Shown piece by piece: positions 1 to 52,781 of a stretch of 64,000 bases of DNA. The stretch is from Gracilinanus agilis (lineage: Eukaryota). Position 1 is the first letter of the stretch, and each line of letters starts with the position of its first letter. A program made the position numbers and the translations under genes. The notes under the pieces are model-generated. The model searched no databases. It was not told the origin of the DNA and saw only the letters and a program-made list of their open reading frames with translations. The stretch lies in the NCBI RefSeq assembly GCF_016433145.1, contig NC_058131.1:353330338-353394337 (forward strand), given 5' to 3'.

Positions 1-50
1 CTCCCTTCAGCTTCACTCGCCGAAGGCATCACTGCCGGAGCTGTGGGAAG
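1..50 (+). CDS. FYVE-domain protein, ZFYVE28/LST2-like, penultimate exon (partial, begins before window)
   Basis: Codons from nt 3 read PFSFTRRRHHCRSCGK (FYVE R(R/K)HHCR motif), followed by GT donor at 51-52 (phase 0). Confidence 0.85.
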
Positions 51-292
51 GTAGAGGACTGCCCTTGGCTTGGATGGTGGAGGGTCAGGACAAGTAGAGG
101 AGAAAGAACACAGAAGGGAACCTGCTGGGGAGGTGGAGAGACAGATGACTGCTGTGTTTCTAGGGTGGTCCTTTCTAGTGCTGGGGAATGGGGGCAGCAG
201 CAGTGAGGTTAGGCCCTTCTGCGGCTGCTGAAGCTCACCTCTCTGGGGTAAGAGTGGAGGAGATGGTGAGCTCTTCCTCCTTTGTCCTCTAG

Positions 293-409
293 ATCTTCTG
301 TTCACGATGCTCATCCAGATCAGTGCCTCTGCCTTGGTTTGGCTACATGAAGCCTGTGCGGGTGTGTGCCCACTGCTATGCTGCCCATGTCATTCCAGGC
401 TGCTCCTGA
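293..409 (+). CDS. FYVE-domain protein, ZFYVE28/LST2-like, last coding exon
   Basis: Polypyrimidine tract and AG at 291-292; reads [41 protein letters not shown] at 407-409; CxxC zinc ligands and RVC motif complete the FYVE finger in phase with the previous exon. Confidence 0.85.
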
Positions 410-1060
410 CATCTCTGCCCCAGGCATGCATGAGTCTTGGCCAGCTGTTGGAACTGCTTCCGCCTGTGTCCAGGCTCTGTGCTGGGGATTAGGGGGGCCT
501 GGCTGCCCTTGGGACAGTCATCCGGGGTGCTGAATCGAACTCAGGGTGGAGAGATTGAACTCGAGTCTGCAGGGGAGAACTTCCCTGCTGTCCCCTCCCA
601 GGTGAGGGGTGACTCTTGGGCCCTTGGACTGTGGATCTGGGGTACTCCTCCTCCCAATCTTGAAAATTCTCAGGGGTGCTGCTCTCACACAAGCTGCGTG
701 TAAGTGACCGAGAAAGGGCAGAGGTTAGGGTGTGCCCATCCTGTCTCCTTTCCTTCCTTCCTCCTGGGACCTCTTAGAATAGACTGGCCCTACTTTTCAG
801 CCCTCTCCTCTCTTTCACTGCCTTTCCAGGCCTGTAGTCTGGGTCTGGCCTGAAGGGGGACCCTGGGGAGTACGGCCAGGTGTTTGTATATGTATATATA
901 AGGTGTCAGTGGTGGGGTGGAGAGCCCAAGAGCACTCTTATTGAGGCCAGTCTGGGCTTGTGAATAGCTGATCTAACCCATCTGTTCCTGCCTGTCCGGT
1001 GGGGTAAGGGGTGAGCACCGGAGTTATGGTTCCTATTGTTCACAAGTATATTTCTGTTTA

Positions 1061-1066
1061 ATTAAA
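1061..1066 (+). terminator. Candidate poly(A) signal (ATTAAA) of the FYVE gene
   Basis: ATTAAA ~650 nt after the stop, preceded by U-rich sequence; TGTATATA Pumilio-type motif at 891-898 in the putative UTR. Confidence 0.45.
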
Positions 1067-1319
1067 GACAGATTCTTCTAAATGGTCTTTAGCTCTCCTG
1101 TGGCCCAGCTGGCAATGGGAGACAGATGAGATAAAAGGGAAGGAAAATGGGGTTTGTTCAAGGGCTTTTACTCATAGTTGCCAACCGGTTCCTTGGAGTG
1201 CATGGAAGACTGAAAGCAGCCAAGTGGGGATCTGTAGAATACTGGGGGTGGGGGGAAGGTAGTTGAGGATAAAACCAAGGGGCCAATAATCCCTGATTTT
1301 TGTCCTGTGCCTGATAATA

Positions 1320-5408: not shown

Positions 5409-5481
5409 ATGGAGCAGGGTGCCAGCAGTAGTATCCAGGTTTTACTGCAAGCAGCTGAGTACCTGGATCGGAGGGAGCGAG
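5409..5481 (+). CDS. MXD3: MAX dimerization protein 3, coding exon 1 (Sin3-interaction domain)
   Basis: MEQGASSSIQVLLQAAEYLDRRER + 1 nt; donor GTAAGA at 5482; SID IQVLLQAAEYL. Confidence 0.95.
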
Positions 5482-6082
5482 GTAAGAAACTTGGTCCCCC
5501 CCCCCCTTTGGGCCTCCCTGTATGTCTTGTTCCCCTCGAGTCAGACCCGGGCGCCTGCAGCCGAGAGAGCCCAAGGGTGGGAGGCAGCTCCCCGGTAGAA
5601 AGGCTTTTTTTGCAAGCTAAACTTATTTTGCTTTCACCTTTTAACTTCATCAAGTGACTACCCCGCCTGGATCCAGCGGGGTCAGCAGAACTGGGGTGGG
5701 GGCAGCATCTTGCTGTCCGCTGTCCTCCCCCTCTCCCCCCTTTCAATCCATCCCAGGCTGCTCCGCTAGCTTCTCCCCCGACTCCCCGCCAGGGCTTCGT
5801 TTCCCTCGCTGTCGTAGCTTGAACCCCCGCTCAGCTTGGGAAGAAGGAGGGAAAGAGGACCTGGCGCCAAAAACCTTCTCCCCTTTTCCCCATGGTCCGC
5901 AGCGCGCCCCCCACTCAGGGGGCCGCAGCTCATGAACAATCTAAAGATTGTCCAATAATCTGGCTCGTGATTTGGGGCAAGCCATTTAAACTCTTTTGGG
6001 CCCAGTTTCTCCATTTGTAAAATAACCTGATGTTGAGGTGTCTTGTAGCTCTAATCGTCTCTGAATACAATCTCTCCCTCAG

Positions 6083-6179
6083 AGGCAGAGCACGGCTATG
6101 CTTCCTTGTGTCCTACTCACAGCCTGGGTCCAGTCAACCGCGGAAGGAGGAGACCCAAGGCTCCTAGGGACAGTTTAAG
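6083..6179 (+). CDS. MXD3: MXD3 coding exon 2
   Basis: AG 6081-6082; (E)AEHGYASLCPTHSLGPVNRGRRRPKAPRDSL; GT at 6180; 97 nt, phase 1 to 2. Confidence 0.93.
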
Positions 6180-6563
6180 GTGAAAGTTGGATTTTGGAGG
6201 GGGGGGGGGGTGCAGCATGAGGTGGAGCTGGCTCATCCCAGCCTCAGTCTACTCAACTGTGAAGTGGGTGTCCCCGTTCTGACTCTAGGGGGAGTCTACA
6301 GGTGACTTAGTTTCAGACTTGGTGCCCGATAGGGGGTGGGTAGTGGTTGGAGTAATGGGTCTTTTTCAGGCTGGTCAGAAAGAAAATTGTGTATAACTGA
6401 AGGCAAGCCATTAACCTCCTCGGGCCTCAGTTTCCTCATTTGTAAAATGAGGATTTGGATACTCTATAAGGCCCTTTTCAATGGGAGAGGAAACAGGGTA
6501 GCCTAGGTCTCAGCTGAGTAGCTGCTGGATTGCTTCACCTTCACCCCCTCACTTGCCTTTCAG

Positions 6564-6593
6564 ATCCATGCACAGCGAACTGGAGAAGCACAG
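6564..6593 (+). CDS. MXD3: MXD3 coding exon 3 (basic region, 30 nt)
   Basis: ttgcctttcag acceptor; (R)SMHSELEKH(R); GT at 6594; phase 2 to 2. Confidence 0.92.
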
Positions 6594-7066
6594 GTGATTC
6601 CGGAGGGGGTGGCTTGCTGTTTGGCCTCATTTGCTCCAAAAAGTGTTTTCCCCTTTTTTCAAAATTTCTCCAGGGGCTTGGAGGCCAGGGGGTTTGGGTT
6701 CCCATGGTAGCAGGGGAGAAGGGGGAAACTGCCTGGGGTACCAGGACAACATCTTAGAATCATAGAGGTAGAGCCAGAAGGAACCCGAAATGGTGTTTAG
6801 TCCAACCCTTTCCTTTTCTAGATGAAAACTGGAACTCCCCTTCCCATGATTAAGAAGCAAAGAGGTTTATTTTAGTGAGCCTTGAGCTTATTTGAATTGA
6901 GGCTCTGGCATCTTCCACTTACATGAGTGTCTCTGAATGGCAGTTTCTTTAGCTGTTACTGGAGACAACTATTTACTTGAATTGCCTAATGTACAGAGTT
7001 GTAAAGAAAATGATTGGAAAAGGCTATCCAAAAGTGATATTATTCTCTGAAAAAATGAGAGGGTTA

Positions 7067-7262
7067 GGGGGCAGCCAGATTAGCCAGGCCCAGAGATGAG
7101 AGGTCCTGGGTTCAAATCTGGATTCATACCCTTCCTAGCTGTGTGACCCTGGGCAAGTCACTTAGCCCCCATTGCTAAGCCCTTTCCTCTCTTCTGCCTT
7201 GGAATCAATACACAGTCTTGAGTCTAAGGCAGAAGGTAAGGGTTGTAATTTAAAAAAAAAAA
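7067..7262 (+). mobile_element. SINE1_Mdo-like SINE
   Basis: ggggcagc head, gggttcaaatc B box, cttctgccttggaatcaatacacagt...gaaggtaaggg tail and A-tract. Confidence 0.75.
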
Positions 7263-7574
7263 TGATGGAGTTAGGCTTACCTAATCTCTAGGATTCCTTT
7301 CTGGTTAGGATTATAGCACTAGGGAGTTAGGTGAGGACCCTTGCCTTATTAGCATTATTGTCACCATCCTGGAGGACAGGGGGACCTTGAACCAAAGGAA
7401 GCAGTCCTCAGGTGGAAAGGCTGCTGGATAGGAAGTGGTCCTGGGTTTCCTGCTGGACCCAACTGGAGCCTGGCAATTTGCTGCTGTTCCCCAAACCTCC
7501 CCCCATCTTAGGGGAAGCCCCCAAACCCATGGATCCCTTCCCAGAAGGCCTGCTCACTCTCTTCCCTCCCACAG

Positions 7575-7689
7575 GAGGGCCCAGCTGAGACACTGCTTGG
7601 AGCAGTTGAAACAACAGATGCCCCTGAGCACAGATTGTGCCCGATACACCACCCTGAGCCTGCTGCGCCGGGCTCGTCTACATATCCAG
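7575..7689 (+). CDS. MXD3: MXD3 coding exon 4 (helix-loop-helix)
   Basis: [38 protein letters not shown]; acceptor ccacag, donor GTGAGG at 7690. Confidence 0.96.
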
Positions 7690-8169
7690 GTGAGGTGGGA
7701 AGGCACAGGGCCTGACTGGACTCTGTCCTGTTCCCCATGGGAGGAGGATCAGGGACGAGGGGAAGCACAGTGCTATCTCGCGTGTTGCAGAGGGAGAGGG
7801 CTCCAACTATTAGAGAGTTGGAATTCTCCCAGTGTTCCATTTGCCATCATAGTGCAATAGAATGCTAGATCTGGAAGAGACTAAATGACTGTGTAGTCTA
7901 GCCTTTTCCTGATGTGGAGGAGAAAACGGAGGGCCAGAGACAGGATTACCTTGACCAAGGTAATGTCATTGCTGGAGTCAATCACTGTTGCCCCTCTTCT
8001 GGCTTCAGAACCTCTTTCTTCTTATCATATTCCTCCTTCTTGGTGTTAGAAGCATACATTGAAGGTGAAGGCTCATGGGGCCAGCCCCTTGCTATCTAGA
8101 CAGGATGAGGGATTGTGCCCTGGAGGGACTTCTTATACACGGGGCCAACGTCTCCATGGTGTCAGTGAA

Positions 8170-17066: not shown

Positions 17067-17271
17067 TTTTTTTTTAAACCCTTACCTTCCATCTTGGAGT
17101 CAGTACTGTGTATTGGCTCCAAGTCAGAAGAGTGGTAAGGACTAGGCAATGGGGGTCAAGTGACTTGCCCCAGGGTCACACAGCTGGGAAGTGTCTGAGG
17201 CCAGATTTGAACCCAGGACCTCCCGTCTCTAGGCCTGGCTCTCAATCCACTGAGCTACCCAGTTGCTCCCT
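17067..17271 (-). mobile_element. Young SINE1_Mdo-like SINE with 13-bp TSD
   Basis: Near-consensus reverse copy; TSD AGGGTGGCATTAT at 17054-17066 and 17272-17284. Confidence 0.9.
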
Positions 17272-19693
17272 AGGGTGGCATTATCTTGTGAGAGGTATGG
17301 TCCCTACTTTCCTGGTCTCCTTTCTGGCCTTTACTCAGGAAGGGCCTCTGCTCTATTGGAGCTACAAGTTTCAGTGTTCTTTTTGACCTGGGAAATGTGA
17401 CCAGGTCCTCTGCTTCCTTGTGTCTGCTTCCTAGTGCTCCTCTCCACCCTGGAACTGCCTCTCAGAACTGCTTATGAGTAATAGAATTGCCAGTCAGCAC
17501 CAGCTTCACTCAGTACCAGCAAAGGGTCCTCTGTAATCTCTGACTAGTTTTCTGACCCCCTTAAGTATCTCTGGGCTTGAGAGCTCCCAAAGCTGCTGCT
17601 GTTATGGCTGCTTCCCAGGCTTACCACTAGTTTACCCTGGTGTTACAGTCCTCTTCTGAGGACTCTCGTGTTGTCTTGAGCTGGATAAATGTCTCCTGCT
17701 CTTTTGTTGACTCTGCCTCTCCAAAACTTGATTCAAGGCATTATTTTAAAGTTGTTTGGAGGGGATTGTTGGGAGAATTCAGCTGGGACTTGGCCTTGGT
17801 TCCACCCAGATCTACCACAATCACTTTTTAAACATCTGCTCCACCTCAGTCTAAGTTCTTTCCAGTACCCCATACTTTCTTACAATAACTTTTTAAAAAT
17901 ACATAAGCACCAAAGCAGGGTTCCATTTACAAAGCCAGCAGTTTCTGACTGTACATTTGATAGTGATGGGAGAGCCAGGGGACCTGGTGTTTTCTCGGTG
18001 TGATCTCAAGTGAGTAATTTCCTTTTTCGGCACCTCAGTGGTTTGAACTAGATGATCTCTAAGGCCCTTTTCCAACTCGAATGTTCTAAGATTCCACAAG
18101 AGAAACCCAAGTCCTATCTAATTAGCTCATTTGTTAGTTATCAGTTACCACTTTAGGAGGGATGCCTGTGTGTGGGGACGCCTGTCTGCTCGCCTGCCCA
18201 GAGACAGCTCAGAGCTGTGGGATGACAATTTTGACAGAATAAACCTCATAATGATAATGAGCCTCATTATCAGTGCTCAGAAACCTTGAGCCAGCCTGAT
18301 TTCCTATTTGCATCAAGTGCAAATCTCTCAACCTGTATTTATAAGATTTCCCCCCCCCCCCAATCTGGCTTCAAACCACTTCCTTAACATCACCCTCTCC
18401 TCCTCCTTTATACCCCTTTAGCTGGGCAGAACTCTACAACACACTAAGAACACACTGTGCTGATTCCTGCCACGTTATCATTCCTTCGTCTGGAATTCTT
18501 TCTTTGTCTAGCTCCATCCTACTCATCTTCAATAGATTCTTCTTAAGTTCTGCTCCTTCTAGGAAAATTTTTCCATGCATTCCAGCCTAGTCTGTTCTTC
18601 TTCCTCTTCTGAATGCTCATATTAGCTTGAAGCATACAGCAGGATACTATTTTCTATGAAATAAATATTCCTTGTTCCTTTTTTCCCCTCATAAACACTC
18701 TCATATACTATTTTTTCTCAGTTATACTGATGGTGGCTTGAAGTCAGGACTGTTTGCTGATATCCTGCCGTCTCTTCCACATTACCCAAGTATCATCAGT
18801 CCATATTAAAGCTCCAAATATACAAATTATTGTTTGACAAATAGATATTGATTACGCATCTACTGTAATATGGATGAAATGTTGATCTGAAGGGAGTAGA
18901 GAAGAACCCAGCTGCACTCTGGATGTTCATTCCACTCTTCTTGGCCGTGATACACATAAGATGCCTTGGGGCTCCTTTTATCTGGTTACAAGACAGCTCA
19001 AGTTCTTAAATCATCTGTCTTCATTGGGGTCTGTCTATATGCTCAGCCCTGTGAGGAATACAACACAGGAAGACCATATCCCTACCTTCAAGGAGTTTTC
19101 AAACCTTTTGGTGGTAGCAGTGCAATAAGACCAATACGAATTGATGAAATAAATGTTATAGGACCTCCAAGGAGAGAGGGGATCAGTGCAGGTTGTTCTG
19201 GTGAAGGAGTTTCATGGAGGAATTGGGCCCTGATGGGCTATTGGCATCTGGAGAGACAATCTAGTCTAGACCTTTCTGGAGAAAGCTTTAGCCCCAGAAA
19301 ACACTAGGAAACCAATCTAAGTACTGAAAATGGCCCAAGTGCTAGGAGAAGGCTACCAGCTCAGGTTAACATTTTTTCCTGCAATGGCAGTATCCAAAAG
19401 ATACTGCAGCTCCTTTGGTTAATGTGAGTTGGCCTGAGTTCCCTGAACCCATTGCAGTCACTCAGAAAATTGATCTGATGTGAATAAAGTTGGCTCAGAT
19501 TCATTGGTTGTCAGAACTGGTCAAAGAATCCATCCAACATTCTTATTTTACAGCTGGGGAAACTGAGGTCCAAAAATGTAATGGACATACTTTTCACATA
19601 TCAGACAGGATCCCCTACCAGATACTCCCACCTTTCCTCTACATTGCCCTCTTATACTTTACCTGCTACCACTGTTTTCCTGTAATCTGAGCC

Positions 19694-22793: not shown

Positions 22794-23282
22794 CTGGAGT
22801 GAAATAATCACAAGCCTTCAGTAATCTAGACCCCCAAGGGGAAAAAAAAAGCAAGATTCCAAAGGGCCTAGGGTCAGATACCATGAAAAACAAGCTGTTA
22901 TCGTTACCTTATCACAGCTATTATTTATATAGTTCTTACTATGTGCCAGATACTCTGCTAAATCCTTTATAATTATCTCCTTTTATCTTTACAACAATAC
23001 AAGAGGTAGTACTACCCCCCATTTTACAGATGAAGAACCTGAGGTAGAGGGTTAAGTGACTTGCCTATAACAATCTATTGGAGGCATCAAATTTAACCAT
23101 TTCATTTTACATATGAGAAAACTAAGCCCTAGAGAGAAGTGACTGTCAAATAGCACACAGCAAAGTACTGGCAGATCAAGAATTACAAACAACTTTGCAA
23201 CCACTCTTCTTTGTGAACCATGCTGCCTTCCCTCTTCAGTGAACCCCTCCTCTGAATGAGTGAATGCTAAAGAGGCACCTAC

Positions 23283-23508
23283 CATCAGCCGAGCATGGTT
23301 AATGTTCCAGGTGAAAGTGGTCATGGTCTGGTTTTGTGGGTCCACGATAGAGTCTTCTAGGATATATACCGAGTGGGCTACGTTAGCAGGGAAGAAGCGC
23401 TCCGCCCAGCGGGGCATCCTGTTGGTCTTTGTCAGAAGCCGCCTGGATAGCAGCTTCTGGTCAGGAGTGACCTCCCGGTGCACAATATCCTCGGTCAGCA
23501 CATGTTTG
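23283..23508 (-). CDS. PRELID1: PRELID1 coding exon 2
   Basis: (S)KHVLTEDIVHREVTPDQKLLSRRLLTKTNRMPRWAERFFPANVAHSVYILEDSIVDPQNQTMTTFTWNINHARLM; 226 nt. Confidence 0.97.
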
Positions 23509-23634
23509 CTGTATGGGAAACACAACCCAGGAGGTCGGCTAGGGAAAGTGACCCGATGAATGTATTAGGTACCTAAAGCACTGCCATTTCATGTCCTATT
23601 CCCTCCTGTTTCTACTACATTTTCACTTAAGTTC

Positions 23635-23680: not shown

Positions 23681-24372
23681 AAGGCAGTTCAATGTTCCTC
23701 AAATCTTATTTCAGCATCCAGTCCATCCCTGTATCTGTGACATGGCTAAAAATAACTATCTTATTTGATATTTATTGAATTCAGAATTTTAAAAAAAGGA
23801 AGTTGGCTCTATGTTTCTCAGAGTGTTGGAAGAAAAAGAGGACCCTTAGGCCTGACTTCACACCCAAGGTGTTCCCAGACAGCAGCCCAGCCCCATCACT
23901 TCCAATCCCGGGGTGGGCCAGGGTGGAGCCCAGGCTCAGGGCAAATTCCAAGCCGAGGGAGGCTGCAGAGAGTGACTCTCTCAAGGGCCCTTTGGGAGGC
24001 GGTGCCCCGCGGGGCCGGAGCCCCTTTACCCGAGAGGTGAGCTGCCCCTCCCCCACCGCTCTGGCTCCTGGGACCTGATTCCAACGAGCCGGGGAAATGG
24101 GGGTGGGGGGGTGGAGGGGAAAGGTCTCCGGCCTCTGCTTACAGAATCTCAAGCACTAAGGGATCCTGCCCTTTGAAGGGGCTGGGGGGTGGCGCCCACG
24201 GTCTCCCACCCGCTCCGGAGTGGGGTTGGGGGGCTTCAGGGTTTCCTGCCCGCTTCTAAAAGAGAAAAGCGAGAGGAGAGGCCGGCGGTCTCCTGAGCTC
24301 TCTACTGGAGGCGTGGGGTCTCCTGACCTCGCCTGCAAGGGGTCGAGCGACACTCGGGTCTCCGGGCCTCAC

Positions 24373-24464
24373 CTGTAGGGGTTGGGGTAGCGCTGCCAGA
24401 AGGCAGTGAACACTTGGTCCCAGGAGCTCCGGAGCACGCTCTGCCCCAGGAAATACTTCACCAT
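24373..24464 (-). CDS. PRELID1: PRELID1 coding exon 1
   Basis: ATG at 24464-24462; MVKYFLGQSVLRSSWDQVFTAFWQRYPNPY(S); donor GTGAGG. Confidence 0.96.
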
Positions 24465-25430
<966 letters not shown>

Positions 25431-25780
25431 TGAAGGCTCCAGTCCATAAGGGTAAGGGTTTGAGTAGGTATGTGAAACTGACGGGGAACACCCTGGTCAG
25501 CCAGCCAGTTAACCTGATTTTTGAGGCCCGGCTTTGCTCCTGATCCCCGTAGGCATTTGTTATTCGCTTCCTCTCTCTGGGCCTCAGGTTCTTTTCTTGT
25601 AAAATAAGTAAGAGTGACCTTTGCCTGGTATCTCCCCTAGGGTTGTTGGAGGTTGAACAAAAGGGAAGTGAAAAAGGCTCGTGTAGACTGCTGTGGGTGG
25701 TATAGGTACCAGTGGTGGTTGTTGTGGAAGGGAGCAGTTGAGAAATGAGGGATGACTATTTCCTTCCCCCCCACATACAG

Positions 25781-35256: not shown

Positions 35257-36995
35257 TCACTTCTGTTTCGACTCTGCAGGCTCATGGTTGGAAGGGGTCT
35301 GGTTAAGAGCTGGTACTGCACTTTGCTCAGGCTTAGGGTCTGGCCCTTTGATTAGCCCTTTGCCAAGGGGTCGACAAGTCTGTGCCAATGTCTGTGGACT
35401 CCCAGGTGACCGACAAGTCTGTGCCAATGGCTGGTCTGCCCCAGTAGGACCAGGACTCAGCTTGGCTGCAGTCAGCACTTTGCCTGCAGGCCAGGGAGTG
35501 GGCCCTGCTGGGGACTTCCCCAGGGCCCAGGGGGGGTGCTCTGTCATTGCTGACCGTTTCTCTGCTGGGGGAACAAGGTCTGGTGATTTGACAGGGGGCC
35601 TAGGGGACTGCACCATAAGTGGTGTTGTTTTTGTGGCAAGCCCTGGGGATTGTGGGGATCCAGCCATGGGTTCTCCTGAGGCTAGGGCTTTGCCGAATGA
35701 CCCAGAGCTCTGCTCCATTGACACAGGTACACGTCCTGCGGCCCGAGGAGCTTGTTCAAACAAGTAACCCTTGGCAGGGGGCCGCGGGATCAGTCTGGCT
35801 TGTATGAGTGTTTTGCCAGCCTGCCAGGTGTGCTCCACAGGGGCTGAAGCTCTTCCAGATGCTTGGAGGACTGCTTCGGAAGGGTGAACTTTCTCAGTGG
35901 CCCGAGGCATTTGTCCCAGTGCTTTGTTAACAGGCCAGGGACTCTGCTCCAGCACTGGTAATTTTTCAGTGGGCTGGGGTGTAATTTCATGAGGTGAAGC
36001 TGCTCGTTCCTTTTGACGAGGACTCAGTTCAAGAACCATAGTAGCTCGATCTTTTGGCCGAGTATTTTGGTCCACGGGCCTTAGTGCTTTTTCATTAGAT
36101 ACAAGGTTCTGGACCACAGCTGACAGCACTTTTTCAGAAGGTGGGAGTCTCTGGCCCAAAGGGACAAGGGGCTTGTCTGAGGTCTGGGGTTTGGGTCCAG
36201 TTGTCACTGGGGACTTGTCTGAGGTCTGGGGCTTTGGGCCATTTGTGACTGGGGACTTGTCTGATGCCTGGAGTCTCGGTCCAGTAGTAACTACAGGCCT
36301 ATCTGGTTGCTGAGACTTTGAGCTGATAGTACCCAAGGACTTATCCAAAGATTGAGGCTTTGGGCCTGCTAAAGCTACAGGTCTGTCCAACAGTTGGGAC
36401 CTGAGGCCAGCTGCTACTGAGGACCTGACTGATGGTGGGGATTTGGGGCCTGACAGTGCTTGAGAAGGGTTGTCAGACAGTTGAGGTCTAGGGCTTGTCG
36501 CTACAAGAGATGTATCTGCTGGCCTCTGGCCTACTTCTAAGGGCTGAGGTCTTGGACCTGATACTCCAGGGCTTTTATCTGGTGACTGGGGCGTGGAGTC
36601 AGGCATCACAAGTGGTTTATCAGACAACTGTGGCCTCTGACATGTTCCTACTAATGTTTTCTCTGATAGCTGGAGCCTTTGGCCCATTGCCCCAGGGGCT
36701 TTGTCCACCATCAGGGGTCTTTGAGCAGGAATCTCAGAAGGCTGCTCTGCTAGGTGAGTGTTTGCACCTGGAGTCAGCGGCACAGGGGGAGGCACGTACT
36801 CACGGATCTCCCCAGGCTCCAGAGGGTTGGGGCCACATGGATCATGCTCTGTGCAAGACAGGCGACCATCCAATTTAGAGATGAACAGCATTCCCTCTCG
36901 GTGTTGTTTGCAGAAGGAACTAGGGCACATCTCACAAAAAGATGCAGCTTCTTTTCCACAAACGTCACACTGGTGCCATGGACACTCCCATTTCC
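35257..36995 (-). CDS. NSD1: NSD1 last coding exon (C5HCH + low-complexity C-terminus; human exon 23 equivalent)
   Basis: (G)[66 protein letters not shown]...PAESKQK*; cttttcag acceptor; matches 557-aa ORF. Confidence 0.97.
36172..36297 (-). repeat. NSD1: 42-bp coding tandem repeat (~3 units) in NSD1 last exon
   Basis: cttgtctga recurs at 36172, 36214, 36256; encodes GP(R/K)(L/P)Q(A/T)SDKSPVT(N/T)-type 14-aa units. Confidence 0.9.
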
Positions 36996-38908
36996 CTGAA
37001 AAGGGAGAAAATAGTTGTGCAGCATTACAACAGGCATAGAGGAGATATAAGATGGCTCAGTAACCTCCCCAGTCTGAAGCTTTCCTAACCAATGGGGGAG
37101 TGGGGGTGGGGGAGGGAATGGGGACACAGACACACATTAAATGGGGGGACACCCGAACATGCCCCACACATTAAAAAAAAAATCACTTTGTCCTTCAGAG
37201 ACACAGATTCCTTGTTTACACAAGAAAAACTATTTTCACTCAGAGTTGAAAGGAATAGTTAACAAAAAAGGGAGGACTGATCCCAGTAAACATGGATGTA
37301 ATTGAGAAATACATCTGTTCTGGAAGAACTGCAGGAAATAAAAATTACCAATGCATCTTGTGGCTCTTTGTTTAGCTACCATAGGAACAGAAAAATTAAA
37401 TACATATTTGGTAGGAAAGACTCATTCTTGTTCACATGCTAAATAGCCTTATCTAAGGTTCTTGAAAAAAGAGCTGAGTTGTTTATCCTAATCTTTCTTG
37501 CATTCATGGCTCAGAGGTGCTCCCTCTAAAAGGTAGAAAATCCCTTACTCATGCCTTTTCTGCCCAGAGTGCCACAAACGCTCTCCCTCCGCCACTAAAA
37601 TGGCATACCCCAGGCCTTCACATCCACACTGTACATGCTCATTTCACCAATGCCAAAACTATTTACAAAGATTTCAAAGTCAGCACCTTAAAAACGACTG
37701 GCAGAAAAATAGATACATGTTCCTCTCCACCACAGTGTACATTAAGTAAGAACCACTTCCAAAGAGCATCAAATTCTCTAGGACTGTGATTGGGGTCTCA
37801 TTCCTTAAGAACATCTAACAACTATTCCAAAATCTTAAGGCTAGAAGGGAATGCCAGTTCTTCTGATACAATCTGATGACTAAAGAGATGATATTCCAGG
37901 AAAGTAATCATTCAGCTACCTCACAAAGACCTCTAAGGAAGACCAATCATTATATCTTCCCTTAAAATAGTCAAAATTATGCTTTTGTACAGCTTTCTTT
38001 AAAACAAACAAAACAAACAAACAAACACCCCTTATCTGTAGTCTTAGAATTGATACTTAGTATTGGTTCCAAGGCAGAAAAGTGGTAAGGGGGTTAAGTG
38101 ATTTGCCCAGTCACACAGTTAAAAGGTGTCTGAAGTCAGGTTTGAATCCAAGACATCCTGTCTCCATGCCTGGTTCTCTATCTATTGAGCCATCTAGTTG
38201 CCCCTACCCTTCTTTTTTTAAATTTTAATTAATTTAGAATATTTTCCCATGGTTAAATGATTAACCTCCCCTCTCCCTTCCCTGAGCTGATAAGAAATTC
38301 CACTGGGTTTTACGTGTATAATTGAGAATGACCATTTAAAGTAAAAATCCCTCATCATATACCCATCGAACCACATAATCGATCATGTTTTTCTTCTGCA
38401 GTTCTACTCCCCAAGTAGTAGTATTTTCATAGATGCAGATGCTACTATTTCCTCTGGGTGTCCTCTCCCTCTCCCTCCCCTAAACACCTCCTTATCTCCT
38501 TTCTTAGAATCAATACTAAGCATCAGTTCCAAGGCAGATAATCCCTAAGGAGTAGGCAAAGGAGGCTAAGTGATTTGCCTAGGGGCACACAGCTAGAAAT
38601 GGGTGAATCCAAACTTGAACCCAGGACCTCCAATCTCCAGGCCTAGTTCTCTATCCATTGATATATCCACCTAGCTACCCCATCTTCCTTTTATCTTAAC
38701 AAAGAAGAATTTCAGATATGGTGAGATATTTTCATGGGTTAAGTGATAATGTAAATTTCAGCTAACCAAGCCACACTTCTCTCCTCTTCTAGAAAGTCTT
38801 ACTTGGGAAGGCAATCCTTCATATATTCTCAGTCTGTGGCAAATATGAGATCTTAGAGGTGGATTCAGTTCTAGGTAGTCAAGAAGACAAGTTATTGGTG
38901 GTACTAAC

Positions 38909-39113
38909 CTGCAGGTCTTTTTGTCAAATTCAGGCAGTCAGCATGATAGACTTTGGGGCAACCTGGTTTCTTGCAGGATACGAGTTGCCCTGCATCCCCA
39001 CAGCTGAAACATTCATCCTCTCGCTCCTTTGTAATCTCACCCTGGGATCGGCGCTTTACCTGTTGTCTTCGTTTTAGTTTCTTGGATTTCTCTTCTGTGG
39101 GATTAGGATGATT
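38909..39113 (-). CDS. NSD1: NSD1 exon (PHD5; human exon 22 equivalent)
   Basis: NHPNPTEEKSKKLKRRQQVKRRSQGEITKEREDECFSCGDAGQLVSCKKPGCPKVYHADCLNLTKRPA(G); 205 nt. Confidence 0.96.
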
Positions 39114-40473
39114 CTGTGGGAAGGAGATTTGTCAATCAACACAACTATTTTGTTTTATTCTTGACATTTCTTAACTTCTCCAACTGACATGAAAAGGAAA
39201 GGAAAAAAGGATGTTTAAAACAGGTCTGAAGCCAGAGCAATCTGAACAAGACACTCAATTCCAATATTTTCAAGTGACCAATTTAAAAATCTATATTAAC
39301 TGAAACAGTATATTACCAAAAGAACCCCCCCCCCCAAAAAAGCCTCTTTACATTCTGTCTTAGTAACAACTCTAAGACAGAATAGCAAGGGCTAAGCAAA
39401 TGGGGTTAAGTAGCTTGTCCATGGTCACACACCTAGGAAGAGTCTGAGGCCAGATTTGAACCTAGATCCTGCCAACTCCAAGCCTGTGACTCTATCCACT
39501 GGGCTACCTAGCTGCCCTAAAAGAACACTCCCCAAAATCATGAGAGCCAAAACAAACAAACAAACAAATAAATAAATAAATGAATGATCATGAGAGTAAG
39601 AATTCTCATTCACAGTAGCCTTCCATGAAACAAGTAGTCCAAGGATAATTCTTAAACATATGAAAAACATATATTTATATATAAAAAAAGGGCTGAACAT
39701 TAAAATTTTCTCTCTCATGCATCTAAAACAGCTTTTGATTTTATCCATTTTATTTCTTGCCAGTGCCACTGTTAATTTCTCACTTACATTTTAAATACTA
39801 ACCTCTTGGGCAGCAAAAATCCAAGTAGGTGTTTTTTTGCTGTAGACAAAATGGAAAATTCAGCAGGAAGAATTATCTATCTAACTTAGCATTTGTTCTC
39901 TTGTGTCAAGATGCTGAGAATTCAAATGAGCTTAGAGAAAGTAGATGATGATGTGGAATTGGGAAGCAGTAACAAAGGAGGTGATCATATTTTTTACCAA
40001 CCATGTTAGAAGTCAGAAAAAAAAACCAACAACTCAAATGTTGTTAGGTCCTATATGGCCTATGTTTCAGTTATTAAGAGAAGAGGTTCAGAGGGTAGCT
40101 AGGTGGCTAAGTGGATGGAGAGCCAGGCCTAGAGATAGGAGGACCTGGGTTCAAATCTGATCTCAGACACTTCCCAGCTGTGTGACCCTGGGCAAGTCAC
40201 TTGACCCCCATTGCCTGGCCCTTACCACTCTTCTGCCTTGGAACCAATACACAGTATTGATTCTAAAATGGAAGTAAGGGAGAAAAGGAGTGGAGAGAGG
40301 AGAGGAGAGAGAGGGAGAGGGAGAGGGAGAGAGAGACAGAGCGAGAGAGATTGTGATTCAATCAACATCAGAATGCTTTAGTGAACAGCTAAGGTTGACA
40401 ACTCCAGGCAAAAATATCTTTTCTCCAAGAAAATCACTATTACCAACACTGAAAATGTGCCAGGATGAAGTAC

Positions 40474-40580
40474 CTTTGGCCGAACACCCAAGAAACCACT
40501 GCAGTTTGGTGCTCCACATTTGCAAACAGTTTTTCCATTCCCTAGACACTCTAGATTGTAGTTGAAGGTAAGTTCAGTGC
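40474..40580 (-). CDS. NSD1: NSD1 exon (SET end/post-SET; exon 21 equivalent)
   Basis: (G)[35 protein letters not shown]; 107 nt. Confidence 0.96.
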
Positions 40581-42407
40581 CTGAAAAGGAAAAAATATGA
40601 ATAAAATGACATTGTATTACTCCTTGTTACCTGTCAGGAATACCTGCTAACGGAAAAGAGCATTTTCATTAAAAAGGGGTTATTGGTTTCAAAGGGAATA
40701 GGCTAAAAATGAGACTTAGAAATAACTTTAAGGGCAGATAGCTTTGGGAATCTACAGCTTGGGAAAGCACATACAAATAACAAAAGTCCTTTGATCTCAA
40801 CAACATATGATAGTAGCATGATATAGGGACAAGAGAACCAAAAAAAACAAGGAAAGAGAACACTTTTAACTCTAACAGGGGTGTTGGAAGGAGGAGTGCT
40901 TCATGGCAGAAGGAAAAATGAAACATCCTTGAAAAAAATGCAGAGAGGTAGGAGATGGCATGTCCAAGTTCTAGGAATAGATGGTAGTCTAGTTTGCCTA
41001 TAATGTAAAGTACCTGAACAACAATAACAAACAGACAACTGAATAGCTATGTGAAATACATAAAGAAATAAAGGGAGGGGATCTCATTTCATAGCCATGA
41101 TCCCATGAAGTATGTAATAGAGAAAAAGAATAATGTAAAAATCAGCTGCAAGGCTAGAGTTATATCGAAGAACTTAAATGCTAGACTAAGCGGCAAACAC
41201 TGAAAGCTTTTGAGCAGGGATGTGACAATTATACCTCTGCTTCAGAAATTTATTTTTGTAAATTTTTGTAAAAAAAAAAAAAAAAAAGTTGTGCAAAATA
41301 TGGGCTGAAGAGACCAGAGGCAAGGAAATAGGTCTGAAAGTTGCTATAATAGTGTATATGAGAAGTAATGAGGACCTGAACTAAAGTGGTGACAAAGGTG
41401 AGTGGGCATAAATTGTGGGAACTGAATTTGTAAGACTGAATGGATGTCAGTGGGAAGTTTCACATCTGGGTGATTGAAAAGAGGGCAATGCCCTTGAAAG
41501 AAATAAAGAAATAAAGAAATAAAGAAATGGATAGGGTGTTTTGGGGTGTGGGAAAGTTTGGAGAGGTGAGGAGATAGGGTTTAGTTCAAGATATTAGGCT
41601 TGAAGTTATAAGAACAAAATGGTCAGAATGACTCAAGGACCAATAAATGCATTCTTGTAAATAATCTTTTGCTTTAATTTCAATGTTTTCCATGAGTACA
41701 ATTATTTTACCTCCTTCACCACAGAGTAATAAAGAAACATTCCTTTGAAGAATCATATGTGCCTTCTAGAATGCTCTGCACAAAATTTACGACTCATTTA
41801 CTGGACAAACTATTTCTCTCTAGGGAAGGTACTGCCAACCCAAGATAAAAGACATGGTAGCATAACTAGAAATTTGGGAAGTATTATGAATTTGTGAGGA
41901 AATGAATATCCCATCTTGTGGAGAAAAATAAAAATCAAGTTCTTAATGAAATGTCAATAGGTTAACACTGAATAAATGAACTTTGCCCTTCTGACTTTGT
42001 TTTTTATTCTGACTACTGCTTTTTATTGCCAATAAAGATTGAGCAAAGGGCAAACCTAGTCTTTTTTCCTCAGAATTCTTGCACAAAATTTCCTAACTAG
42101 TCGAGGTTGAATGAACTTGATGACAGCACATTTGTTGAAGGAACTCTTTCTAAGGAGACCATTAAGAACAGAGATATGGGTAGGCCACAATTTAGATTCA
42201 TTTTTCCCCCCTGGCATTAATATGAGCCATAAAATAACTGTACTAGAAAAATGTAACTTGCCGTGTATACCTGAAATTCAAGTCATTCTTGCTACTATAT
42301 ACAATATGAATTGTATTCATTTCCAACAATTAAGTAAGCTCAAATTAGTTACTCAAGGATGGACACTCTTGTATTTATTAAAAACCACTTAAAGGCTATT
42401 TTCTTAC

Positions 42408-42549
42408 CTGCTTTGATGTCACTTAGGGCAAAAAGCCCAACCCGGGTATCTCCATTCACAGACCACTTCTGAGTTTCACAGTTGGGCTGGCAGCAGTGAT
42501 TCATAAACCGAGCATAATTTCCTTTGGGGCCAGCATCAATAATCCGGTC
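42408..42549 (-). CDS. NSD1: NSD1 exon (SET; exon 20 equivalent)
   Basis: [47 protein letters not shown](G); 142 nt; RFMNH catalytic motif. Confidence 0.97.
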
Positions 42550-44253
42550 CTGCAATCAGTTAAAAACAAAAACTATTTTATTCATAGTTTAATTTTTAAA
42601 ATTATTTTAAAGAGAAATATTGCACTACCTCCTTATATTTGAAGCAAATAATGGTAACAATAGCTCATGTTTATACTGCACTTGAGTTTTCTAACCATGA
42701 GACAAACACAGACACAGACACGCACAGGATGAAGGAATGAAGTGACTGATCCAGGGTCACATAGCTAGAAAGTGTCAGGCTAGGGGTTTGAACCTATACT
42801 TTCTAGATAATGATGTTATCACCATTTGTATATAAATAAACCTCATTTGCCATTACTCTCTGCATATATTCTTTTGTGCTAGACATGATGTTTGTGTCTA
42901 TAACACAAATATGTGCAGGAGCTTATTTCTGAATGGTCTGTCCCAGAAGGATGAAGCTTTTTGATCATAACACTTTTATAACCATATATTCAAGCATTTA
43001 ATAGTTGAGATCTGCATCACTGAGGGGGAATGATATTTCAAATGATTTTTTTAAGTATCAAAAAGGGAAAATTAGTCAAAAGCCTAATTGACTCTGCACA
43101 TATCTGTACAGGGCAGACACATACAGACTGAACTACATGCATAAAATATTAGTTTAAAATGCAACATTTTTTATTTAATGATATTCATGGGATATAAAAT
43201 TACTTGGACTATGCATTTACAAATGTATTTCTAACTACTGCTTCTTTTAAAAATAAATTAATTTGGGGGCAGTTGGGTAGCACAGTGGATAGAGCACCAA
43301 GTCTGGAGTACGGAGGACCTGAGTTCAAATCTTAGAATTGATATTAAGACAGGTTAGATTTTTTTTTTTTAACTTAACAAAATCTGTCTACTCTCCCCTC
43401 TAACAAGCCCCCACAACTAAAAAAGAAAGGAAAACAAAGCTCTTGTAACAAATATATTTGGTCAAACAAAACAAATTTTTGCAATGTCTGTGTCCCCTCA
43501 CCCCAACCTCCTCAAAAAGTGAGACCAAATTTCTTGTGAAATTCTCCCAAATCTATTTCTATTTAGGTTAAAAAAAGAGTTGCAAGCAGAACACAAACGG
43601 GAAAAAAGAGACTTCTGAAAAAAAGTAAAATAGCTTCCCTTTTCTGATCGAACCAAACACAGTTCATGCACTTTGCACACCTTCAAAAGCACTAAGTAAT
43701 TGTTTTAGATATTATTAAGATATCACAAGACAGATTTAGAGGTGGAAGGGACTTAAGGATGGCTAAGAATGATATGTAAAAAGACATTTTCACAGTAATT
43801 GATCTCGAATTGTACTATAAAGCAAAAATCATTTCAACAGTCTGGTAACTTCAATAGTCAACTGTGAAATCTTGGCTACTCTCAGCAATGCAATGATTGG
43901 GACAATCTTAAAATTAAAAGACTTATGATGGGGAATGCTATCCACCTCTAGAGAAAGAACTATTGGGAGTTGGATGGGTGCAGATCAAAGTATACTATCT
44001 TTCAAAATCAGTGTAGTTACAGTTTTATTTTAATATTTTGGTTTTGTATGAGTGTGCTCTTACCTGAATGACCAATATGGAAGTGTTTTATGTGATAATA
44101 AAAATTAAAAACAAAACAAAAAACAGTGTGGCACTGGCTAAGAAAAAAGAACGGAAGATCAATGGCATAGATTATAGGGGTGAATGACCATAAGCAACCT
44201 AATGTTTGAGAAACATGAAGATTTCAAACTGCTGGGAAAATCAGACAACAGTG

Positions 44254-44600
44254 TGTTATTTGGAATTTTATGGGTTCCACTGAGAGGTATTTGGGGCTCA
44301 TTTGAGTTTTAAATATTTAGTTATATGACAAACTTCCTGTGGATGTTTAGGGGGTTTGGAAACTACATTTCCCATGATTCCTCTTGTAATGCAGGTAGAT
44401 AGGAAGTGAGATTATGTAACAATAATAGAAAATTCCTGGGGTGATTAGAGGCGGTCTCTTTTGGTACCTGCGTTCTTTTGGCACGTGGGAGAGGTGGAGA
44501 GAAGGTATGGCTGGGAACTTGAATTAGATCTTAGCAGGCGCGTGGTCATCTTATATTTTACCAAATGGCCTTAATTAAAATATTAATACTCTCTCTTCCA
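44254..44600 (+). mobile_element. Solo LTR, same family as 13661-14017
   Basis: Starts tgttatttggaa; shared blocks with reverse complement of the 13.7 kb copy; right end degenerate. Confidence 0.65.
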
Positions 44601-45292
44601 TTCCCCTCTTATCTCTAACTATTGTAGTTAGAAGACCTTTGTGGGTATAAGATGATTATGTAAAATGATCACTTGGGGTGACTAGGTACCCAAGGATCAT
44701 CAGGGGGGATTGCCATCAGAAATAATGTCACCCAATTAGTAAAATACATAATACAGTCCCTGCGATATAGCAGATACTTGGAAAATGCTATTAGTATTAT
44801 TTTTGTTGTCATCATAACTTTAATTAGTTCCTTTGCTACTTGAATGAAATTTTCTAAGTTAATCACCATTTCATCTGCATATGATGATAATTATGAAATC
44901 TCTGCCAATGTTTTAAATATTTTGTTTATTTTTCTACATTTATTTCTTTAGCTAGCTCTCCTAGAGCTCTGGCCCATACTGGATGGAGAAGTAAGAGAAT
45001 ATCCACATTTTAACTCTGTACTTGGAGGAAAAGTTTAATGTTTTTAGATAATTCAGATAATATCAGCTTTTATATTAGACATATACTTATTTTGTATTAC
45101 TGAAATTTCTTTCTATGCTTATTCTCAAAATTCATAAATTCTTATTTTCTCAGATTTTAATATATATTCATAGTTAAGTGGTTTAAATTGTTTTTATCAT
45201 TATTGAGAATTATCAATTATCAATAATAATTAGTGCTGTTATATCAATAAATATTCCAAATATCCTAAAAAAAAAAAAAAAGAAAGAAAGAA

Positions 45293-45881
45293 TGTCACCC
45301 CATCCAACTTAGAATTAAGTGGGGAGGGGAAGATTAGTTACCCACATGTAACAATAAGTAACAAATCAAGATCAAGGGACTGCCCGAAACAGTGTTGAGG
45401 CTGCCATTTGTCCACTTGAAATTGAAGGTGGATGCAGGAAGTGACAAAAGATGCTATATTTTAAATATGACGGTAACTTCCTGTGGAGGCAGTTGGCGCT
45501 TTGAACTTGGTATAGAAGGATCTCTGGCGAGACCTCAGACAGCCTCCCTCTGAATTGTCATGTAGGTAAGTTAGGCTGACTTCTTTTCTCCTCCCTTGGC
45601 GTTTCTGGAGGCTCTATGTAGACCTCAAGTGGCCTCTCTTGCCTCTGTAATTGTAAAAGGCCTTGTGGCTAGAAGCCTTGTTTAATGAACCTCTGTGCTC
45701 CTTTGCTGGGACCTCTAAATACTTATCTGGTCGGGGCCAGAGTTTCTCTCTCTCTATTTCCCTACCTTCAACCTTCCTAATTGTAAATAAACTTCCTGAC
45801 TTGGTTCCATTTTTTTATTTGAAATCAAGTTAATCCGATTTCTGGCGACTATACCTTAAATATCTAGTTTCCCCTCTTACA
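45293..45881 (+). mobile_element. Solo ERV-type LTR (589 bp)
   Basis: TGT...ACA ends, TATA-like tatattttaaata, AATAAA 45786-45791, internal donor GTAAGT 45566-45571, ETS cores. Confidence 0.6.
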
Positions 45882-46373
45882 ACAATAAGGCAGAAACTAG
45901 GCATAGTCAAATATCTCATACCCTATATATCAAAATAAGGTGAACATAGAATAGTTGATTTGGCAGATCTATGGAGAAGAGAAGAATTTATGACCAAACA
46001 AGAGATAGAGAATTACAAAATATAAAATGAAATAGCTATCTTTAGCAATATAATCATCCAAGACAATTCTAAAGGACTTATGACAAAGAAAACTATTCAC
46101 CTCCAGAGAAAGAACTGTTGGAGGAATCAGATGGAGATCAAAGGATACTATTTTTCACATTAATTTATTTAAGGATATTGTTATATTTTGGGGGTTCTGT
46201 TTTTATATTAGTATTGTCTTTTAATAATGATCAACATGGAAGTATGTTTTGCATGATAATACATGTATAACCCAGATCAAATTGCTTACCATCTTCAAAA
46301 GGGGGGAGTGAAGTGTTGTATAACATATAATTGAGAAAACATCTTTGATGAAAAAGACATTTTCTGTACTTAC

Positions 46374-46490
46374 CTTATCCAAAGTGAGCATGTAGAAATT
46401 GGTGATGTCATGTTCTTGGGCATAACGGATTCGGGCCCTACACTCCTCTTCATCTATTAATTCTCCCACATACTCATTTACAAATTCGCC
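46374..46490 (-). CDS. NSD1: NSD1 exon (SET; exon 19 equivalent)
   Basis: [39 protein letters not shown]; 117 nt. Confidence 0.97.
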
Positions 46491-48229
46491 CTGTAAAAAA
46501 AAAAAAAAAAAGGAACTATCCTTAAGGGCAGGAAAGTGCACAAAAACTTACCTGTGATTCTCTTTAAAGGCTTACCTTGCACTAAGAAAATAAGATAACC
46601 AGGTGGCATCTTCTTAATAAGAGTATGTGGGCACAGCACATTAAGTGTGTACTAACTGGTTCTTAACTGACTCAGGCAGGTTTTGAGCCAAGAGTTTTAC
46701 ACCCTCTCACATACTTTCCATGGATTTTGAAATTATTGGAAAGGTAAAAGCCACAGTTTAACTTCTTTCATATCTCCACCAAACACAAAAGTGCTTTTCA
46801 TGTCAACAACTGGTTCCATCTGCAGCTTCTTTTATTCACTTAGTCTAGGCTCTAAAATGTTTTCTTCAAACCTCTCTTATTTTCCTTTATGCTGAGAGGA
46901 TGAAGAGGGACATCTCTTTGAGAAAGTTAACCCTTCCATTTGGGTCATCAAATCCTCTAGAACCACATGAGTGCCATTCATTTGTGTGTACTCTTAGACA
47001 ATTTTGTAACAGTTCAGGCACAAGATTTTGAAAGTCTAACCTAAGACAAAACAAACAAAAAAACCCAAAAGTATTCTCGAGATTACCAAGAGTTAAAATT
47101 ATCTTTTGATGGTAATGTCTTCATTCTTTCATTTAAGTGTATGTATACCTCTAGATTTTTTTCTTGGCTTCTAAGCTCTCAATATAGATGAAAATCTGAC
47201 AGTTCAAATTCAGATTATCTGTTTCCCTATGTTCTAATTTTTGTTGATAAAACCACCAGTTAAATAATCACTTTAAGAATTAAGTATCATATTATAAGAA
47301 ATGTTTTACCTATTCCTTCCCCATCATGACTTGTCAAAACCAACAAATTTCAATTACATGTCTCATATACCCTCTATCATTTCCTTTCTACTTTGTCAGC
47401 AACCATCTTGGCACTCAATGCCAGGACAAGATAAGAATCTTCTAGATATATGTATCCCTTCTATATCTTGCCTTTCCCCATCATGGTTTATGAGATATTG
47501 CAGGTCAGCTCAAGAAATTAAATGGGAATTTTGGGGATGTTTTGTAGAAGCTGCAGAATAAAAAATTAGTCTGGGAAAAGAATGTGAAAGTCAGCAGAAG
47601 ATTTAACAAAGGCTAGAAATGTTAATATTTTCTCATATAAAGCCTATGTGCAAATATTTAAGCCAAGTTTTACAATAAGGTACTGCAAACACCCCATAAA
47701 AGAAGAAACAATAAATAAAAGAAGAAAAAAAACCAGACTTCTTGGTATAAAGGGAGAGCCAAAAAGCAGATTTTCCATATTGTGGGGCACTCTGCTTCTA
47801 AATCCCCTAGATGTGAAGTCTATCAGCTTCTAATCTTAGGTTTTTCTACTCTAGCCTATCCTGTACATAAAAGGTACTTAAAATTACAATTATAGTCATG
47901 GTTCCATTTAAATAAAGAAATGAAAATTCCTTTATCTAATCAGAATCTATCCTTTCCCTCTTAACTAAAAAACAAGCAAACAAATAAACAAGGCCTTTAC
48001 TTTTTGTCTTAGTAGCAATCCTTTTTTTTTTTTTTTTTAACTCTTTATTTTCTGTCTTATAATCAATACTGTACATTGGTTCCTAGGCAGAAAAGTGGCA
48101 AGGGTCAGACAATGGGGGTTAAGTGACTTGCCCAGGACTACACAGACAAATGTGTCTGAGGCCACATTTGAACCCAGATTTTCCCAACTCCAGGCCTGTC
48201 GCTCTATCCACCAAGACATCTTAGCTGTC

Positions 48230-50830: not shown

Positions 50831-51397
50831 ATTCTAATTTTTATTCTACATATAGGCATCCACATGGCTTCATTGTTACTAGACTTTTAAGAACCTGGAG
50901 AGCAAAGGAAATCTAAATTTTTACCCTTTTATCTGCCATTCCATAACCAAGATTGTTCACTTTATACTGCCGTCAATCAATGTTTGTTGAACTGAATCAC
51001 CACAGTGAATATTTTCTTCCTCTATACCAGAGGTATTAAACATGTGGGCCACAGGGTCCATGTGGTCTACAATACTCCTGAGAATGGTTCAAAAATTAAA
51101 ATGTAATTGGATATATTTAACAAAATTAATAGAAAAATAAAATAGGCATCTAATTGTGGTTTTCTAAGTCAATGTGGCCTGTAGGGATTCTTATTAATGC
51201 TTTAATGGCTGTATCTAATATATAGCATTAGATAAGCAAGTACTATCTGCCTGTTTACATACAGCATTTAGACTAATCTTAACTTTCACGGTGCTTCCAA
51301 GTGGAGAGAGAAAATGGAAACAGGTAAGTCTTGAGGGAAATTATGTTTCTTTTCCATTTCTAAGAAGATTCATGTAATTGTCAAAGACATCTTTTAC

Positions 51398-51667
51398 CTT
51401 TTTAATATCCATCTTTGTCCGTAAGCCCCAGCCTCGCTGTAATGTACGGAAGATTTCAACCTCAGGATACTGGCGTTTTGAGAAGCACTGGTTCTGGCAG
51501 CGTCCACCAGCAGGACAGACAGTGGGATGGCACTCGTATAAGAGCATGCGGTTAATACACTCTGAGTCAATGCCACAGGGGTTTTCATCTGAGGCTTTGC
51601 AGTTACATCGGGGAATTTCTGACAGGTCTGCAGTAAAGATCTGAACTCTGCCTATTGGACGATTAAC
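51398..51667 (-). CDS. NSD1: NSD1 exon (AWS + SET start; exon 18 equivalent)
   Basis: [90 protein letters not shown]; 270 nt. Confidence 0.97.

Positions 51668-52750: not shown

Positions 52751-52781
<31 letters not shown>

Follow-up and report, generated by a model that had tools for sequence, protein, structure and literature searches.

An LST2-type FYVE gene upstream of MXD3 in Gracilinanus agilis very probably belongs to an ancient sister clade of ZFYVE28

Introduction

The first 409 nucleotides of the DNA analysed here, a 64,000-nucleotide stretch of the Gracilinanus agilis genome (the window), encode the end of a FYVE-finger protein resembling ZFYVE28/LST2, and the next gene on the same strand is MXD3. 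ZFYVE28 proper adjoins Mxd4 in opossum, chicken and Xenopus (PMC3177325). The locus therefore raises the question of which gene lies beside MXD3: ZFYVE28 itself, a duplicate of it, a member of another FYVE family, or a remnant. An earlier note on this DNA, made from the letters alone, had proposed a second LST2-like gene retained from a genome duplication, kept in marsupials, lost in humans and still uncharacterised. McFerrin and Atchley had described an unannotated ZFYVE28-like protein ("ZFYVE28*") linked to Mxd3 and Prelid1 in 2011, and such linkages were taken as evidence for paralogous regions derived from two rounds of genome duplication (PMC3177325). The duplicate-copy idea is correct, and the 2011 paper had already published it as a passing remark.

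We conclude that window positions 1-409 are, very probably, the 3' end of a real and annotated LST2-type gene belonging to a clade (clade B) that is sister to ZFYVE28/LST2 proper (clade A), and that the duplication separating the two predates the split between sharks and bony vertebrates.

Results

The end of a clade-B gene at the window edge

Reading and translation of the sequence confirmed the in-phase splice of two exons that the earlier note had drawn from a GT at position 51 and an AG at 291 (Table 1), and a pyrimidine-rich tract precedes the acceptor. Positions 3-50 are translated into 16 residues ending in RRRHHCRSCGK (...FTRRRHHCRSCGK); among them are the PI3P-binding R(R/K)HHCR motif and the second CxxC pair of zinc ligands. 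From the last coding exon come RVC and the final two pairs of zinc ligands in the FYVE finger. All of the FYVE signatures that had been reported as intact are present in the joined 54-residue translation, six zinc-ligand cysteines, RRRHHCR and RVC being visible in the window itself. The phase-0 intron separates the CGK and IFC codons not only in the window but also in gar, sawfish, rhea and sand lizard, where its length is 615, 1765, 125 and 533 nt, respectively. A 3' untranslated region of about 0.67 kb downstream of the stop codon is plausible, the ATTAAA signal being the sole poly(A) signal variant found by motif scan in positions 410-1085. The window contains no N bases, and an Rfam scan of all 64 kb returned zero matches.

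Table 1. Features of the window, with positions counted from its first letter.
Feature	Position (nt)	Strand	Details
Penultimate coding exon, 3' part	1-50	+	48 nt of codons from base 3; exon extends left past the window edge
Last intron	51-292	+	242 nt; GT 51-52, AG 291-292; phase 0
Last coding exon segment	293-409	+	38 codons (IFCSRCS...RVC..HCY...PGCS); TGA stop 407-409
Putative 3' UTR	410-1085	+	about 0.67 kb; end point placed from ATTAAA at 1061-1066
MXD3, downstream neighbour	5409-7860	+	ATG 5409 (MEQG..., SID-type N-terminus); bHLH exon within ORF 7435-7860, HLH E 7e-7
PRELID1 exon	23052-23525	-	convergent with MXD3; PRELI E 2e-23
CpG-rich block	~24-25.5 kb		between PRELID1 and the expected RAB24 start
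NSD1, 3' half	35257-54903	-	Pfam hits in the rows below
NSD1 last exon	35257-36930	-	C5HCH E 9e-11
NSD1 SET-like exon ORF	46221-46541	-	by eye; zero Pfam hit
NSD1 PWWP exon	54511-54903	-	PWWP E 1e-15

Two side observations concern the same segment. The wallaby protein (P0384/P0416) runs beyond the position of the opossum stop and ends in ...VCSLHLCPRR, and the window frame after the TGA (407-430) reads HLCPRHA and then stops; it seems that the stop codon has been displaced by a few codons in the wallaby lineage. When sampled words of positions 1-1100 were looked up in many small RNA-labelled public runs of two coded organisms (A and C), a constant 12-13% of them were found, as were 60% of the sampled words of the last coding exon (293-409). 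The 60% might stem from one base change in that exon or from a closely related species, and a strain variant or a partial contig would give a similar picture. Every sampled word of both 1-1100 and 293-409 occurs only in runs of a third coded organism (B).

The gene is already annotated

The 54 joined residues are the exact C-terminus of the 575-aa Monodelphis domestica protein F6XJ86 in UniProt, and the RefSeq protein XP_007474199.2, named "lateral signaling target protein 2 homolog", ends in the same residues; the peptide of the penultimate exon is identical to residues 522-537 of both entries. The two entries differ from each other at residue 518, just upstream of the window (CLHCMAC versus CLHCTAC), presumably an assembly or strain difference. 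In Monodelphis assembly GCA_027887165.1 the gene covers 26.7 kb, and the next gene on that strand, 4.9 kb further on, is an HLH gene of 201 aa; in the window, 5.0 kb separate the stop codon from the MXD3 ATG.

At the level of the last exon, the peptide matches human ZFYVE28 best (PDB chain 9f43_G; 25 of 35 aligned residues identical, E 7e-12), and the next FYVE families (Vps27, HRS, RUFY1 and EEA1) follow at E 1e-5 or worse. The resemblance to ZFYVE28/LST2 that the earlier note had seen in this finger, and the identity of about 70% that it had given, were both accurate. This short peptide is 71-74% identical to both clades and by itself cannot separate them, so the full-length protein is required. 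In a phmmer search, residues 6-388 and 406-572 of the full protein aligned with human ZFYVE28 (2.6e-133), and Pfam recognizes a FYVE domain (E 4e-21). The name "lateral signaling target protein 2 homolog" is shared in NCBI and UniProt by two sets of proteins: a long set of about 920-1020 aa, which is ZFYVE28 proper, and a short set of about 510-780 aa with RRRHHCR instead of RRKHHCR. The marsupial proteins, F6XJ86 among them, fall in the short set. The clade-B gene is annotated in RefSeq and UniProt for opossum and many other species; together with the printed mention in PMC3177325, these entries mean that the gene, which the earlier note had called uncharacterised, is not undiscovered.

A sister clade of ZFYVE28

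A maximum-likelihood tree was built with IQ-TREE (LG+C20+F+G4) from 46 full-length proteins aligned over 731 columns, with annelid and aphid LST2 as the root. In it the short proteins fall together as clade B, with 27 sequences ranging from sharks to marsupials (support 100/100), and ZFYVE28 proper forms clade A, with 16 sequences ranging from skates to one placental (94/94). Within each clade the species tree is followed from the cartilaginous fishes upward. Eight species have both copies: sawfish, bowfin, three frogs, tortoise, swan and gannet. Marsupials and platypus group together inside clade B (100/99), as do the amniote B sequences (100/99). Forcing the mammalian B sequences onto clade A cost 217.8 lnL units and was rejected by the AU test (p-AU 6e-59), which rules out a true ZFYVE28 orthologue misplaced by a long-branch artefact. 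The clade-B gene is by this analysis not a ZFYVE28 orthologue but a member of a separate sister clade, as the earlier note had suspected when it judged the peptide too divergent for an orthologue. Because both clades contain cartilaginous fishes, the duplication is older than the split between cartilaginous and bony vertebrates; hagfish LST2 sits at the base of the tree on no resolved branch.

The two clades have evolved at different rates. Terminal branches in clade A are mostly 0.01-0.2, and its FYVE finger is nearly invariant from sawfish to swan. Branches in clade B are several-fold longer, the marsupial stem alone amounting to 0.93 substitutions per site. The faster evolution of clade B could reflect relaxed constraint.

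The MXD3 locus and the origin of the duplicate

Open reading frames and Pfam hits bear out the neighbours previously named for this window, MXD3, PRELID1 (-) and NSD1 (-), so that the region is the 5q35-type block and not the MXD4/NSD2 block; space for RAB24 remains beyond PRELID1. The clade-B gene does not adjoin MXD4. In the window, in rhea and in sand lizard alike it lies directly upstream of MXD3 on the same strand, with PRELID1 beyond on the opposite strand. The rhea locus reads 996-aa gene (-), clade B, HLH, PRELI (-) and Ras-type GTPase (+), which is the order of the window (clade B, MXD3/HLH, PRELID1 (-) and the expected RAB24/Ras). Other species share parts of it: in sand lizard, clade B is followed by HLH and PRELI (-), where that locus ends; in spotted gar, clade B (+) lies between a FAM193 family gene (-) and a 199-aa HLH gene (+); and in sawfish, clade B (+) precedes PRELI (-). 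Frog clade B and sawfish clade A showed no neighbouring genes in the 10 kb around them. The upstream opposite-strand gene is of the FAM193 family in gar (Pfam FAM193_C; locus L001, 1-8170) and is a gene of similar size, the 996-aa one, in rhea (locus L003, 255-9131).

Human FAM193A, ZFYVE28, MXD4 and NSD2 all lie on 4p16.3, and on that arrangement a FAM193-LST2-MXD triplet would have been duplicated in both paralogons. Both the timing of the split and its chromosomal setting, in FAM193-LST2-MXD-PRELID paralogons, are consistent with an origin in the early vertebrate genome duplications. The alternative would be a segmental duplication, ancient but small in scale, and the tree leaves it some room in that it dates the split no more closely than before the shark/bony-vertebrate divergence, with hagfish unplaced at the base. 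The neighbourhood makes it unlikely. FAM193, MXD and PRELID genes flank clade B in gar, rhea and sawfish, which points to neighbour families duplicated in parallel, and the human cluster on 4p16.3 would be the counterpart. The parallel duplication was seen on the clade-B side in gar, sawfish and rhea and is taken on the clade-A side from the human 4p16.3 arrangement and from the published placement of MXD3, MXD4 and their neighbours in 2R paralogons (PMC3177325). Tree, AU test, synteny and an intact full-length database protein together uphold a second LST2-like gene as an ancient ZFYVE28 duplicate in the MXD3/NSD1 paralogon.

Two further features of the locus were noted in passing. A 411-aa open frame at 24256-25491 (-) lies in a block of 63% G+C and has a low-complexity translation rich in Pro, Arg and Gly, which suggests that it is no gene but an artefact of a CpG island at a bidirectional promoter. 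The ORFs 17108-17386 (+) and 53634-53909 (-) share a near-identical peptide stretch (GH(T/I)AGKCLR.DLN.GPPVSR..SQSTELPSC). The first lies in an intron of MXD3 and the second in an intron of NSD1, and they resemble two copies of a single interspersed repeat.

Distribution and losses

Protein homology searches found clade B in sharks, rays, bichir, sturgeon, gar, bowfin, coelacanth and many frogs, and also in squamates, turtles, crocodilians, many birds, platypus and at least nine marsupials; membership in the tree likewise places a second LST2 copy in sharks, ray-finned fishes, frogs, reptiles, birds and platypus. The gene is also present in the early-branching teleosts tarpon, conger, bonefish and one mormyrid. 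Most lineages of jawed vertebrates have thus kept it.

The 120 best matches to the platypus protein among annotated proteins include no placental clade-B protein. Because the bottom of those 120 matches is already occupied by non-mammalian ZFYVE28 proteins, a placental orthologue of comparable similarity should have been listed, and clade B has apparently been lost in placentals, as read from annotated proteomes. The earlier proposal of a gene kept in marsupials and lost in humans was supported as to the loss, in that no placental member appears among the best hits, and too narrow about the retention: the gene is not marsupial-specific. With the copy retained in lineages from sharks to birds and platypus, what stands out is its apparent loss from placentals, and perhaps from most teleosts as well. 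Teleost matches to clade B are confined to the elopomorphs (tarpon, conger and bonefish) and the mormyrid, and the match lists contain only the long ZFYVE28 type, and no clade B, for zebrafish, cichlids, pufferfish and other clupeocephalans, which suggests a second, independent loss in most teleosts.

Integrity of the gene

Upstream of the window, the intactness of the gene rests on database gene models. Open frames of about 560-575 aa are found in opossum, koala, wombat, wallaby, Tasmanian devil, Antechinus and bilby, and one of 547 aa in platypus; for Gracilinanus the databases hold a partial model of the protein. The WxxD motif, RRRHHCR and eight cysteines are kept in all clade-B proteins checked, as is RVC, with the exception of RIC in sand lizard. 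Between opossum and the Australian marsupials, the N-terminal domain is 89-93% identical, the helical block 93-100% and the FYVE finger 86-92%, but the linker only 47-65%. Full-length clade-B proteins of other vertebrates are encoded on Logan contigs assembled from public runs; at 2.1-3.5 kb, these contigs have a size that fits spliced mRNA.

These observations bear on whether the opossum gene is a decaying or untranscribed remnant for which the gene models are optimistic. The long marsupial stem branch and the apparent dispensability of the gene in placentals would be expected of such a remnant, which is nonetheless very unlikely: full-length frames exist for platypus and no fewer than nine marsupials, and every species checked has retained the FYVE motifs; across the split between American and Australian marsupials, the linker has diverged far more than the domains; canonical splice sites flank an intron whose position is conserved; and the RNA-sized contigs of other vertebrates carry the full-length protein.

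Protein architecture and the remaining alternatives

An AlphaFold model computed from a 37-sequence alignment has a helical N-terminal domain (residues 1-290), a disordered linker (297-410), a three-helix block (412-472) and the FYVE finger. The pLDDT is about 85-95 in the N-terminal domain and in the block at 412-472, and 74-88 in the finger. The database protein contains, outside the window, an LST2-type helical domain of about 290 aa and a conserved block (LFVCISGVADQLQTNFAS...; LFVCISGVADQLQTN(F/Y)AS), both with columns that are invariant across the 37 sequences, and in XP_007474199.2 the finger gains WVPD and the first CxxC pair, for a total of eight cysteines. The alignment to human LST2 covers residues 5-389 (288 bits) and 696-879 (166 bits) of the human protein, and residues 390-695 have no counterpart. 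The top 20 matches in the Swiss-Prot part of the AlphaFold database are all LST2 proteins, from worms to human (E 3e-34 to 9e-23). The FYVE part superposes on the FYVE fingers of Vps27 and endofin at 1.1-1.3 A, and a PDB fold search with the N-terminal domain gave insignificant helical-bundle matches (vinculin and FAT type, E > 1).

With the architecture at hand, the most obvious alternative, that this is the true and single-copy ZFYVE28 of the marsupial, merely evolving fast, has almost no probability left. The best match among solved structures is indeed ZFYVE28, and the last-exon peptide is about equally close to both clades. Against this stand the grouping of the opossum protein within clade B and the rejection of its union with clade A; the neighbours MXD3, PRELID1 and NSD1 in place of MXD4; the RRRHHCR motif and the short linker without a TOS motif, as in all clade-B proteins; and the placement of opossum ZFYVE28 beside Mxd4 (PMC3177325). 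It is rejected by tree and synteny together. Membership in another FYVE family such as RUFY1 (on the same human chromosome arm), HRS or endofin is just as negligible and is likewise rejected, FYVE fingers being mutually similar enough for RUFY1, Vps27 and HRS to match, but only within the finger and, for the last exon, at least six orders of magnitude more weakly, whereas the N-terminal domain of the clade-B protein also aligns to LST2 and its leading structural matches are all LST2 proteins. We found none of the three outcomes that the earlier note had named as speaking against its duplicate: grouping with a sole ZFYVE28 or with another FYVE family, disrupted and unexpressed upstream exons, or an annotated eutherian orthologue at this position.

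The TOS motif and a possible function of clade B

Human LST2 docks on RAPTOR through a TOS motif at residues 401-405 (FFMDD), whereupon it is phosphorylated at S670 and monoubiquitinated at K87; the modified protein is stable and has a broad reticular rather than purely endosomal distribution, and TOS, S670 or K87 mutants are endosomal and short-lived (Battaglioni et al. 2024, PMC11348030). By motif scan, an acidic-RVFFM(D/E)D TOS motif is present in 14 of the 16 clade-A sequences, those of sharks included, and a FLMDD variant in a fifteenth. The same scan found no TOS-like motif in any of 29 clade-B linkers or in the three outgroup sequences (hagfish, aphid and annelid). The lysine equivalent to K87, the K in KFP(E/D)(E/D), is kept throughout clade B and everywhere that it can be scored. 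The restriction of the TOS motif to clade A is possibly a small, new observation.

We infer from its motifs that the clade-B protein would bind PI3P, localize to endosomes and down-regulate EGFR, that is, that it would be a PI3P-dependent endosomal adaptor. As an LST2-like protein it would be recruited to PI3P-bearing endosomes through its FYVE finger and modulate receptor sorting there. Because its short linker lacks both the TOS motif and the S670 region, it is probably not gated by mTORC1 in the manner of LST2 and so would escape that control. The TOS module, by its distribution across the tree, would have arisen on the ZFYVE28 lineage after the duplication. Taken as a whole, the model of clade-B LST2 as a naturally TOS-less and mTORC1-uncoupled, constitutive endosomal regulator of receptor sorting, one that would retain the PI3P finger and the K87-type lysine while evading RAPTOR docking, with a TOS motif that arose only in the ZFYVE28 lineage after duplication and placentals that keep the mTORC1-gated copy alone, is offered tentatively, as a possibility that we consider rather less probable than its negation.

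Discussion

As a genome feature, the left edge of the window is the ordinary 3' end of an annotated gene, and the synteny reasoning of the earlier note was sound. The wider significance lies in the family. LST2 has a widely retained sister gene that is apparently absent in the model placentals and present in chicken, Xenopus, opossum and basal fishes, and this sister gene does not have the motif by which LST2 was recently shown to dock on mTORC1. As a probable ohnologue pair, the two genes are a clear example of asymmetric evolution, with a slow, highly constrained copy that carries a new regulatory motif and a fast copy that was apparently later lost in placentals. The contrast between them is a natural way to see what the TOS/S670 module contributes to LST2.

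The closest known system is ZFYVE28/LST2 itself (Q9HCC9; PDB 9F43 and 9F45, with mTORC1). The two share the N-terminal domain with its K87-type lysine, the LFVCISGVADQLQTN(F/Y)AS block and a FYVE finger with WxxD, R(R/K)HHCR and RVC. They differ in clade and in locus, ZFYVE28 lying beside MXD4 and clade B beside MXD3; in the linker, which is about 140-150 aa in marsupial clade B and about 470-570 aa in ZFYVE28; in the TOS motif and S670 region, which clade B lacks; in the finger, with RRRHHCR in clade B and RRKHHCR in ZFYVE28; in the C-terminal tail, which is shorter in clade B; and in rate, clade B evolving several-fold faster. Other FYVE proteins (Vps27, EEA1, HRS, endofin and RUFY1) share the three PI3P-binding motifs and superpose at 1.1-2.2 A over about 60 residues, with zero similarity outside the finger. 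The other clade-B genes, among them those of platypus (P0381), rhea (P0316), sand lizard (P0354), gar (P0053) and whale shark (P0006), are orthologues with the same clade, neighbours, motifs, short TOS-less linker and intron site, and the platypus protein has the same ...PGCS end. From these the marsupial gene differs only in lineage-specific ways, its long stem branch and a linker whose sequence is not conserved.
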